DNA of 63,805 nt, the filler included, from Lenisia limosa (lineage: Eukaryota; Protista; Breviatea), in NCBI GenBank assembly GCA_001655205.1. It is 15 parts of 15 records of this genome, joined end to end, with 100 filler letters (N's around TTAATTAATTAA, not from the genome) between each part and the next. Parts side by side here need not be neighbours in the genome. Positions count along the whole stretch, not along the records: positions 29,474 to 31,295 come from LPNZ01003966.1; 14 more parts are not named here. The stretch is one strand, 5' to 3'. Positions 29,474 to 31,700 of this stretch are shown here, piece by piece. The notes under the pieces were generated by a model that searched no databases, was not told the origin of the DNA, and worked only from the letters and a program-made list of their open reading frames with translations. Position 1 is the stretch's first letter. The number at the start of each line of letters is the position of its first letter. Both the position numbers and the translations under genes were made by a program.

Positions 29474-29785
29474 GCACCTTGCCCAAGACAGCGCTCTTGA
29501 CAGCAACAGACCCGAAAATGCCTTGGAAATGGAAGCCGAAGAAATTCCGAGTTCTAGGACACCTTCGCCTGTGGTTGGGTGGTGTTTTTGATATTGTTTC
29601 AATAAGTCTCATTTCACTCCAATCAGAAAATGCTAGAATTTACCCCCCTCCCATCACAAACGACAATTTAACTGCGGGCAATTGACCTGGGCTTTGTTAG
29701 TTGTTGTTTTCAGCCCTCATAGTATTTAGCCGACAGAGTTAATTCAGGGTTTCCAGTGGTGTTCATTCTGACCCTCCCCCCTCAG

Positions 29786-31161
29786 CCGCTCCCAAACCTC
29801 GGAGGAACGCCCCCTCAGCCGTTGGCGTTCACAGCCTCACAATCGTGGGAGTCTTCCGGACCAAAAAAGGCATTATCCGTGAATATGCCACGGCGGCATG
29901 CAGCACAACATTCCTCCGTCACAATCACTCGCAACACATCATCGAACACGTCATTCATGTCTGTCACAGTTGATGACCCTTGTGCCTATCTCCAGAGCTT
30001 CAACGGTAATATTGCCGCCGCCGTGGCCAGTCTTCTTGCTGGCGAAACGGTCTCGCCGCTTTTGGTGTCGGAAGTGGCGTGGCACTTCCGATACGTTTTC
30101 GACGTCCGCCGTGCTCCGGCCCGGGTTGATCCCATTTTGCGCTATACGATTTTGAGGCTTCAGGCGCTTTCAACTATCTGTTGGGGGGGGGGTAGCTATA
30201 TGTAATATTAGTAGGAACTAGCTGTGTGTAAATATCTCTTAATAGCGTGATGGTGTGCGGCTTCCCTACGGTCCGAAAAAGACCGTGAATATATCGATAT
30301 TTATCGCGGATTTATCGAGAAATTCAGTCTTTTTTTGGGACCGTAGGGAAGCCCTAATTATGACATTATCCCTGAAACGTAATGCGTGATGGAGTTAACG
30401 TAAATTTACTCCCCCCACCCCCCAGGCCAGACCGCTAAGGGCCCAGGTGTGTTCAAGGACGCCATAACGGAGCGGTTCCCCACACTTCTTAAGTCCGCGT
30501 CCGCACTCGTCAACAAGCTCAAACCCTCGGTGGGAATTATCGTGTTTTATGGTTCTGTGGGAATTATTGTGTTTTATGGTTCTGTGGGAATTATCATGTA
30601 TTATGGTTCTCAATTTTAGAGTTGTTTTGTTTATTTGCTTCTCGTGTCTTACAATTCTCCATCAAAATATCTGTCACCCCCAACCATAAAGAGAGTGATG
30701 GGATGCGGTGCTGCAGAAGTGACAGGTTTGGGCTTTTGATTTTGGGCTTTTGTTTTTTTTCGTAAATTTTCCATTTTACACATTTGGGTGATCTAGCGGT
30801 GGTGGGACTCTTCAAAGGCTGGCTCGGGCTTGTTTTTGTTTTTGTGTTTTTGTCNNNNNNNNNNNNNNNNNNNNNNNNNNNNNNNNNNNNNNNNNNNNNN
30901 NNNNNNNNNNNNNNNNNNNNNNNNNNNNNNNNNNNNNNNNNNNNNNNNNNNNNNNNNNNNNNNNNNNNNNNNNNNNNNNNNNNNNNNNNNNNNNNNNNNN
31001 NNNNNNNNNNNNNNNNNNNNNNNNNNNNNNNNNNNNNNNNNNNNNNNNNNNNNCAATGGTTCGAAGCTTACAGTCGGCTCTCGTGGCCACACTGGAGATC
31101 TCCTCGTCTTCAGGCACCTTGTACAGCACCGTCAAGACGTATCTCGACTCTCTAGATTACG
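29786..31161 (+). CDS. Unknown protein fragment with a possible UBA-like motif
   Basis: Exon 29786-30179 (DDPCAYLQSFNGNIAAAVASLL resembles UBA-like helices) splices in frame across intron 30180-30425 to CQTAKGPGVFKDAITERFPTLLK; a later exon reads MVRSLQSALVATLEISSSSG. Confidence 0.5.
30258..30356. mobile_element. MITE family A (A2) fused to a family B fragment
   Basis: CGGCTTCCCTACGGTCCGAAAAAGACCG...GGACCGTAGGGAAGCCCTA. Confidence 0.85.
30530..30610 (+). repeat. Tandem repeat, 3 x 27 bp, starting at a splice donor
   Basis: GTGGGAATTATCGTGTTTTATGGTTCT x3. Confidence 0.9.
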
Positions 31162-31700
31162 GTAAATATGGGGCTTCACTTCGGTTCAAAAAAAGACCAG
31201 TAACATATCGATAGTTTTCGACGAGTTATGAACCGAAGTTATGGTTTCAACATGAAAAGAATTCTTGGTTTTAGTATTTCAGCACCCCCCCCCCCNNNNN
31301 NNNNNNNNNNNNNNNNNNNNNNNNNNNNNNNNNNNNNNNTTAATTAATTAANNNNNNNNNNNNNNNNNNNNNNNNNNNNNNNNNNNNNNNNNNNNGCAAC
31401 AGCCACAAAGGGGAGACGGTGATGGAACAAGGCCGCTCGGACGGGAAGAGAAGAGGAAAACAGGGGGTTGAGTGTACTAAGAGAAGTGAGAACAATTATG
31501 ATTAGAGGGATAACCAAGAAGCAGATAATTGCCTCCATCCAGTGGGGATTCTCCTCTCGACTTTTCAATAATCCAAAAAGAGCAGTTTTAGACCGAGAAT
31601 AGGAGAATCACAAACTATCTATGCATAAAAAAAAAAAAATTCCATCTTCACTCGTGATAAACGAAGCTTCATACACTAAGTACAGAATTACCCTCCTCCA

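Follow-up and report, generated by a model that had tools for sequence, protein, structure and literature searches.

Blocks of about 12 G or C at intron ends in Lenisia limosa: a poly-C acceptor module that one-ended repeats may spread, and an independent poly-G block at some donors

We analysed an intron of the breviate Lenisia limosa (assembly GCA_001655205.1) that carries a run of G just past its donor and a run of C just before its acceptor. It occupies positions 30180-30425 on the plus strand of the window (the whole stretch of DNA under analysis, 63,805 nucleotides (nt), filler included) and lies in the piece 29474-31295, which comes from LPNZ01003966.1 and has a gap of N inside at 30855-31053. 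Our preferred explanation, to which we give a probability of about one half, is that a poly-C tract module at the acceptor is spread by one-ended, sense-only repeats, and that an independent G block is present at some donors. Under this explanation, 30180-30425 would be a U2-type GT-AG spliceosomal intron of ordinary mechanism, and G:C homopolymer blocks of about 12 bp would form a distinct sequence class set against the splice sites of this genome. The C block would take the place of a polypyrimidine tract, with a branch-like TNA on one side and the AG on the other, fixing the distance between these two at about 13-17 nt, and a ready-made module of TTTTA, C12 and AG would make up the 3' end of two repeat families, A and B. 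The G block after GT would be a separate feature in unique sequence; where both blocks are present, a predicted G:C helix of 6-12 bp may close the intron as an optional helper.

The intron measures 246 nt, from the GT at 30180-30181 to the AG at 30424-30425. Its G10 block (30183-30192) begins one base, a T, past the donor GT, and its 3' splice module (30404-30425) reads TTTAC, T, C6 (30411-30416), A (30417), C6 (30418-30423) and AG, with the A at 30408 in TTTAC as the putative branch point. Joining the exons as T|GC unites the sole long open frames on the two sides (152 codons upstream, 63 downstream), and the G+C content inside the intron, leaving out its runs, is 0.385 versus 0.553 and 0.596 in the flanking exons. 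An earlier note on this DNA had proposed that the intron has both ends sequenced, bears both runs and gives an in-frame join, and here coordinates, frames and G+C contrast agree with it. Logan contigs of the DNA run span both runs with zero differences. An independent SPAdes contig is identical to the piece over 1381 + 242 bases; this is L001, a 10.8 kb part of a 12.6-kb contig from ENA that was reached through the open reading frame (ORF) of the first exon. Read depth at the G10 block is 32 against a baseline of 21.5, and both intron ends are near single copy, so the G10 block is not part of a high-copy repeat.

That the runs are a sequencing or assembly artefact, with spurious homopolymers or chimeric joins, is very improbable. 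Short reads are prone to errors in homopolymers, C-runs are places where the scanned assembly breaks, and all three assemblies probably derive from the same reads. Three assemblers nevertheless returned identical runs, which are flanked by unique sequence, sit beside GT or AG with the polarity of the genes and bound in-frame, homology-supported junctions; the poly-G artefact contigs that do occur in metagenomes (L005 and L109) look quite different.

Run statistics were collected over 98.8 kb. A phmmer search with one reading frame of family A matched 360 ORFs, and family A ORFs led to eight further contigs of the same assembly with a coverage of 21-33, which together with L001 make up the set (L001, L122 and L124-L130). 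L123, which belongs to another assembly, was dropped; it matched only through a low-complexity tandem repeat. The plus strand of L001 holds 13 C-runs of at least 9, against 0.02 expected. AG follows directly in eight of these (P = 2.6e-7) and A precedes 12, while GT or GTT precedes seven of the eight G-runs of at least 6. On the same strand T-runs are common and A-runs almost absent. Across the 98.8 kb, the counts of G/C runs fall from 128 through 50, 14 and 3 to 3 at lengths 5 to 9 and then rise to a second peak at 12 (8, 15, 31, 11, 8 and 6 at lengths 10 to 15). Run lengths of A/T decay monotonically, with no second peak. Among the 86 blocks of at least 8, 20 adjoin AG (6.7 expected, P = 8e-6) and 21 are preceded by GT or GTT (8.6 expected, P = 9e-5). 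By class, 31 blocks are acceptor-like, 19 donor-like, 2 ambiguous and 34 neither, and the length mode is the same for acceptor-like, donor-like and other blocks.

Within a contig the blocks imply a coherent strand, and where this flips, in L126 at about 11 kb, the called genes switch strand as well. The claims that run polarity follows the gene strand and that the runs are more than generic low complexity are both borne out by this coherence and by an excess and a placement at GT and AG beyond chance. On the sense strand C blocks outnumber G blocks by about 3:1, and interior blocks are mostly C. A limited full-text literature search, which is no proof of absence, turned up no description of fixed-length G/C homopolymers abutting GT and AG.

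The surroundings of the C block resemble a compact acceptor. An A precedes 22 of 33 acceptor-like blocks, always as T-N-A, the block is most often directly followed by AG, and the branch-like A lies about 13-17 nt from that AG. This arrangement suggests that splicing uses the C block as its polypyrimidine tract and the preceding A as its branch point. As one option the earlier note had offered an unusual splicing code based on G and C, and a C block of about 12 placed between TNA and AG is compatible with it.

Many of these acceptors are carried by repeats. Family A is about 170 nt long, and its 24 copies in six contigs (65 kb) are all in sense orientation; on the two contigs with independent strand evidence the figure is 16 of 16 (P = 3e-5). 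Copies start anywhere between positions 1 and 82 of a 136-nt query consensus, and nearly all share one 3' end. A pyrimidine tract and AG follow each of the 17 complete 3' ends, with a C-run of at least 11 in 14, and three of these ends are homology-checked acceptors in L124. Like an introner, a family A element therefore supplies a splice site, the acceptor. Family B (9 copies) behaves in the same way and has its last 25-40 nt in common with A. Neither family has inverted ends. Since A and B are sense-only, start variably at the 5' side and end exactly at acceptors, they would deliver or renew 3' splice sites; they would also accumulate at intron 3' ends, their insertions often falling beside or inside older C-runs. 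Copying probably begins from the 3' end, by a mechanism linked to C tracts, because the 5' starts vary, the 3' end is constant and the orientation is strict. Not all acceptors are of this kind: 17 of 31 acceptor units resemble another unit right up to the run and are repeat-borne, and 14 of 31 have no recognisable repeat.

Variable 5' truncation with a constant 3' end is also a trait that A and B share with retroposons of the short interspersed element (SINE) type. If they are such retroposons, their tail would be C, not A, and the C-runs that flank some copies could be tail, target or duplication. Pfam searches of selected exon and ORF translations, together with the stored gene annotations, showed no reverse transcriptase, although no systematic scan was made. 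C-runs also lie directly 5' of some 5'-truncated family A copies: one copy (L127 10585-10695) is flanked by C15 and C13, and in L128 a C12 stands before a truncated copy. Copies inside introns tend to lack the C-run, as at 30693-30779.

The same observations allow a different account, in which C12 is the tail or the duplicated target of A and B elements inserting in C tracts, insertions elsewhere in genes are removed by selection, and G blocks are simply the other strand. The truncation pattern of family A fits it, as do the C-runs on both sides of some copies and the C12 before the truncated L128 copy. The fixed length of the blocks, about 12, is not unusual for a target duplication, blocks that lie elsewhere than at splice sites have the same length distribution, and a C tail annealing to a G strand would set the orientation automatically. 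We nonetheless find this account unlikely. Donor G blocks adjoin no antisense repeat, 14 of 31 acceptor C blocks have no recognisable repeat next to them, and the A before and AG after the block, both beyond chance, are a better fit to a module of branch point, tract and AG. To our knowledge, moreover, no described element has a poly-C tail or integrates specifically in C tracts.

Searches beyond the contig set were negative for the repeats. A different reading frame of family A gave no match in a word-index search, and the family A core pattern had no match in metagenome scans. The string AATTTTAC11 occurred at 120 metagenome loci, none related to L001 by blastn, two of them being the poly-G artefact contigs mentioned above. 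An unrelated repeat consisting of G5-10, TAATTTTA and C11 or more was seen in contigs from a few metagenome projects (L096 633-668, L018, L035, L048, L050, L051, L082, L090, L091, L093, L113, L114 and L117). L096 has an animal-like exon, and there the repeat is an intronic GT, G10, TAATTTTA, C14 and AG, with no sequence similarity to L001.

The donor G block differs from the C block in its context. Its length mode is 12 and it usually comes after AG|GT or AA|GT, and in 18 of 19 donor units it adjoins unique sequence, the one exception being a misclassified family A end. Donor G blocks as antisense C-tailed repeats were considered and rejected: the flanks are unique and are not antisense copies of the families. 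The G block may help the 5' splice site to be used. GTGGGG could pair weakly with standard U1 through G-U wobble. A small repeat, ACAGTGACCGGGATAAGTCTTGACC..., was noticed just inside two introns with G-run donors (L001 8674 and L124 2152). Its copies lie in both orientations and are often paired as inverted neighbours (L001 5508-5551 and 8777-8820; L124 1675-1706 and 2190-2219; L125 7169-7250; L127 2519-2599).

A second option of the earlier note was pairing between the two runs, by which donor and acceptor would be drawn close to each other. In each of the five G...C introns of L001, the minimum-energy fold does match G-run to C-run, with 6-12 predicted G:C pairs, so that end pairing of the euglenozoan type is predicted in five of five. 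The computed fold of 30180-30425 (-96.4 kcal/mol, z = -6.4) has the two ends paired, and much of its energy comes from a hairpin repeat nested in the intron. The expectation that the 5' G-run and 3' C-run co-occur failed, however, in what is a small sample: among the 20 introns with both ends defined, four have both runs, one G only, ten C only and five neither (Fisher P = 0.52). In addition, the homology-supported L124 intron with a G15 donor ends in a T-rich tract without a C-run, a reading that depends on the 45-nt micro-exon described below. Pairing can thus help some introns, as the folds suggest; since the runs are independent and the G15 intron lacks a C-run, it is not a general rule and does not account for the runs.

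The same data bear on the idea that a GT-G12...C12-AG intron is a non-autonomous DNA transposon, an introner with homopolymeric terminal inverted repeats, whose decayed or half copies would be the one-run introns. Each end is the exact reverse complement of the other, with a common length mode of 12, and a G...C element reads identically on either strand, which alone would explain why polarity follows the gene. Repeats abound in the introns, and the conserved introns of a phosphoglucose isomerase (PGI) gene have no runs, as expected if run-bearing introns are young. Introners bearing terminal inverted repeats and intron ends that form hairpins are known in Amoebophrya and others (PMC7789003, PMC9860276). 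Against this, we saw no target-site duplication in the inspected flanks, neither as direct repeats at the borders of the five G...C introns nor at those of the L124 introns. The G-side sequence is unique in 18 of 19 units and the ends of 30180-30425 are near single copy; between genes the 3' parts are common and the 5' parts are not (1/19). The G- and C-runs are complementary in 5-6 introns, yet the runs occur independently, and the sense-strand excess of C is not what symmetric pairs would give. The span from G15 to C12 in L124 would, in addition, enclose a coding micro-exon. We judge this origin quite unlikely, and a G12...C12 transposon as the source of interior blocks was rejected, these being mostly sense-strand C. 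The third option of the earlier note, that the runs are eroded terminal repeats of intron-generating transposons, survives in part: C-runs are tied to mobile repeats (17 of 31 acceptor units), but those repeats are one-ended and sense-only, the G-runs lie in unique sequence and target-site duplications were not seen.

A further possibility is that the blocks are recognised without pairing, the G block by a C-rich U1 variant or a G-run protein and the C block by a poly(C) factor that replaces the U-preferring U2AF, their complementarity being incidental. Intronic enhancers made of G-runs, and proteins that bind poly(C), are established for vertebrates, which counts in its favour, as do the independence of the runs and the fixed block length. 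The diplonemid Sulcionema specki is reported to have a U1 variant whose 5' end carries a C stretch, along with G-rich 5' splice sites, and diplonemid tracts prefer C (PMC12621601). Conversely, no small nuclear RNA (snRNA) gene was found in the 98.8 kb, where Rfam gave two tRNAs and weak microRNA-like hits on the hairpin repeat; nothing links the host genome to diplonemids; and the ordinary donors GTAAGT, GTATGT and GTAAAT coexist in the same genes. We regard recognition of this kind as distinctly improbable. A bolder extension would be a fixed-length homopolymer splice grammar, GT plus G12 at the donor and branch A, C12 and AG at the acceptor. Its readers would be dedicated factors, such as a U1 variant whose 5' end is poly-C and an acceptor factor that reads poly(C), and retroposon-like elements homing to C tracts would propagate it, building or extending introns from the 3' end. 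We hold this to be unlikely.

Returning to the explanation by a repeat-borne C module and a separate G block, support for the splice sites comes from reading frames and homology. Across four of the five G...C introns of L001, an in-frame join connects the longest open frames. L124 carries a gene for a cytosolic 5'-nucleotidase (PF05761), in which ten exons bounded by GT and AG combine into one stop-free ORF. Coordinates in PF05761 continue over its junctions (20-46 then 49-80; 125-170 then 173-212), and the gap of 44 positions from 80 to 125 is filled by exons of 30 + 15 residues. The smaller of these is a probable micro-exon of 45 nt at L124 2511-2555, between the G15-donor intron and an intron with a C12 acceptor. 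The nine donors of the gene are GTACAG, GTAAGG, GTGCGA, GTATCC, GT+G15, GTGAGGGGG, GTGCGGGGG, GTGAGG and GTATGG. Its acceptors include C12-AG, C6GC5-ACAG, C7-TTAG and a C11 that lies 34 nt before the AG, besides five with ordinary C- or T-rich tracts and no run. All 20 introns defined in L001 and L124 are GT-AG, and none has the nonconventional borders of euglenozoan introns.

Several observations weigh against our reading. A poly(A) metatranscriptome, the sole RNA run of the same study, had no coverage of the gene in the piece. The pair of runs at L001 7054-7520 does not join the longest frames, and the L124 micro-exon is inferred from length and local similarity only. The eight further contigs were chosen through family A, so that frequencies are biased and the link between C-runs and repeats is inflated. 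By the criteria used, 34 of the 86 blocks (about 40%) are away from splice sites; for some of these an AG comes 24-45 nt downstream. A neutral target-site duplication, or the tail of a repeat, might just as well account for blocks of a fixed 12 bp. Both runs are missing in many introns, among them five of nine in the 5'-nucleotidase gene and the three seen in the PGI gene, which shows that splicing can do without the blocks. The PGI gene start (L125 1-700, minus strand) has three short AT-rich introns with the donors GTATGT, GTTAGT and GTGAGA, and such run-free introns hint at two intron classes in the genome. The earlier note had allowed that not every intron has both runs, as the L124 and PGI introns without them confirm: the run grammar is real and frequent, not universal.

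The stored gene calls of the nine contigs read through TGA, a bacterial-type caller having chosen an alternative code, and they run across introns; the stored proteins are mostly artefacts and were not used as proteins. A PDB sequence search with a mis-translated ORF gave no hits. The spliced 5'-nucleotidase ORF needs no in-frame TGA.

The gene around the intron can be followed on both sides, and its exons 1-3 are mutually in frame. An upstream intron ends at 29683-29785 (plus strand, as are all features of this gene) with a degenerate family A copy (29683-29752; L001 251-320 by blastn), C6 (29776-29781), TC and AG (29784-29785). The first exon (29786-30179; G+C content 0.553) has its first ATG at 29885 and stops one base into a codon; it is covered by the ORF 29756-30205 and its frame is open from 29786. 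Pfam had no match for it, nor any match for the 14 exon and ORF translations from the gene in the piece, and a word-index protein search with the first-exon ORF returned only itself and no other homologue. The second exon (30426-30529; G+C content 0.596) has 104 nt and is in frame with the exons on either side.

The second intron is visible in its 5' part (30530-30854), with the donor GTGGGAAT and, at 30693-30779, the family A copy without a C-run; read depth is high at 30670-30853. A 27-nt unit repeated three times head to tail (30530-30610) opens this intron, and GTGGGAAT is thus present three times at 27-nt spacing, always in frame. Any of the three donors could be usable, adding 0, 9 or 18 codons. 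A second case of repeated donor sites was observed at L001 2273-2350, where an exon end with its donor (GGAGTGATGATGGAGG...GGCTGGTGA) is tandemly duplicated two to three times at the intron start.

The gap at 30855-31053 corresponds to L001 1423-1615, which holds a family B copy, a C11-TCTCTC-AG acceptor and 40 bases from the start of the following exon. The visible part of the third exon (31054-31161) has an open frame continuous with exon 2. It is followed by the 5' part of a third intron (31162-31295), which has the ordinary donor GTAAAT, a hairpin-repeat copy at about 31172-31238 and C11 at 31285-31295; in L001 1724-1885 the acceptor AG is read 27 nt past this C11. C-runs had been noted as abutting gaps, and the acceptor concealed in this gap and the C11 at the end of the piece fit that remark; short-read assembly seems to fail at C-runs, precisely where exons meet introns.

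The hairpin repeat nested in intron 30180-30425 lies at 30259-30353 (plus strand) and has 95 nt, with 41-nt arms that are 83% complementary and a 13-nt loop. Its summed contig depth in the DNA run is 78,000-292,000 against the baseline of 21.5 (3,600 to 13,600x), which places it among the most abundant sequences of the genome, and 14 copies in both orientations occur in 65 kb. Short, with terminal inverted repeats, a very high copy number and no coding capacity, it has the features of a miniature inverted-repeat transposable element (MITE), and the flanks of six copies show no clear target-site duplication. Four of five complete 3' ends are followed by C-N-A, which is maybe part of the element. 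Most copies differ from the one at 30259-30353 at 30290, 30303 and 30307. The Rfam hits on the repeat are sub-threshold matches resembling microRNA precursors. Elsewhere, in L126, two identical tRNA-Cys(GCA) genes (166-237 and 718-789) lie 552 nt apart on the same strand.

Parts of this arrangement are known from other eukaryotes. Trichomonas and Giardia have a fused motif of branch point and acceptor, ACTAACACACAG, a conserved mixed sequence of 12 nt. It too is a compact 3' module with a branch-like A at a fixed short distance from AG, whereas in L. limosa the spacer consists purely of C and mobile repeats carry the module. In vertebrates, G runs past 5' splice sites, bound by hnRNP F/H, and C-rich tracts before acceptors can promote splice-site use. 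Those G runs are triplets or quadruplets spread over tens of nt, unlike the single run of 10-15 nt set at GT here.

Introners of Micromonas, Aureococcus, dinoflagellates and Amoebophrya are similar in that repeats form large parts of introns in unrelated genes (PMC9860276, PMC7789003). Some introner families carry only the 3' splice site, and some have neither inverted ends nor duplications (PMC9860276); in Amoebophrya the intron ends form hairpins (PMC7789003). Points of resemblance are families with a 3' splice site only, a sense-only orientation, and intron ends whose inverted repeats can fold into a hairpin that brings the exon borders together, a hairpin that is here a predicted one. The differences are that only the 3' part is a shared repeat in L. 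limosa, the 5' part with the G block being unique, that no target-site duplication was seen, that the complementary ends are fixed-length homopolymers and not family-specific inverted repeats, and that variable 5' starts suggest copying from the 3' end and not cut-and-paste.

Introns of hemistasiid diplonemids have inverted G- and C-rich ends, for which a MITE-like origin has been proposed; about 97% are non-canonical, without GT-AG, and they measure 37-91 nt, while other diplonemids have C-rich tracts and the C-stretch U1 variant, and in one species G-rich 5' splice sites coexist with GT-AG borders (PMC12621601). A G-rich 5' end able to pair with a C-rich 3' end, and a preference for C before the acceptor, are common to these introns and ours. 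Fixed-length homopolymer blocks are not reported in that work, and hemistasiid introns, in contrast to those here, are short and not GT-AG. In the intermediate and nonconventional introns of euglenids, secondary structure likewise joins the intron ends, and intermediate introns add canonical borders (PMC3935182, PMC6221363). Their pairing motifs, however, are short and mixed and stand at set offsets, whereas the motifs in L. limosa are homopolymers and most introns have one block or none.

The origin of introns and the change of splice signals are open questions, and where introns are known to have been gained en masse, the elements involved are of the cut-and-paste kind, with inverted ends and target duplications. 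What we describe is different: a sense-only repeat, whose 5' starts vary, has as its 3' end an acceptor module of branch-like A, 12-nt poly-C and AG, and a matching 12-nt poly-G stands in unique sequence at a subset of donors. The length peak at 12 offers a simple, testable handle. Short-read assemblies break at such runs, right where exons begin or end, and acceptors are therefore missing from the gene models of such genomes. Should the C tract be functional, poly-C can take the place of a polypyrimidine tract wholesale, and what mobile elements spread can be a splice signal in place of an entire intron. Should the G and C blocks pair, canonical GT-AG introns would have gained end pairing of the euglenozoan style and could bridge both classes. 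And were the homopolymer grammar true, L. limosa would make or renew introns by a route distinct from the cut-and-paste introners described so far.

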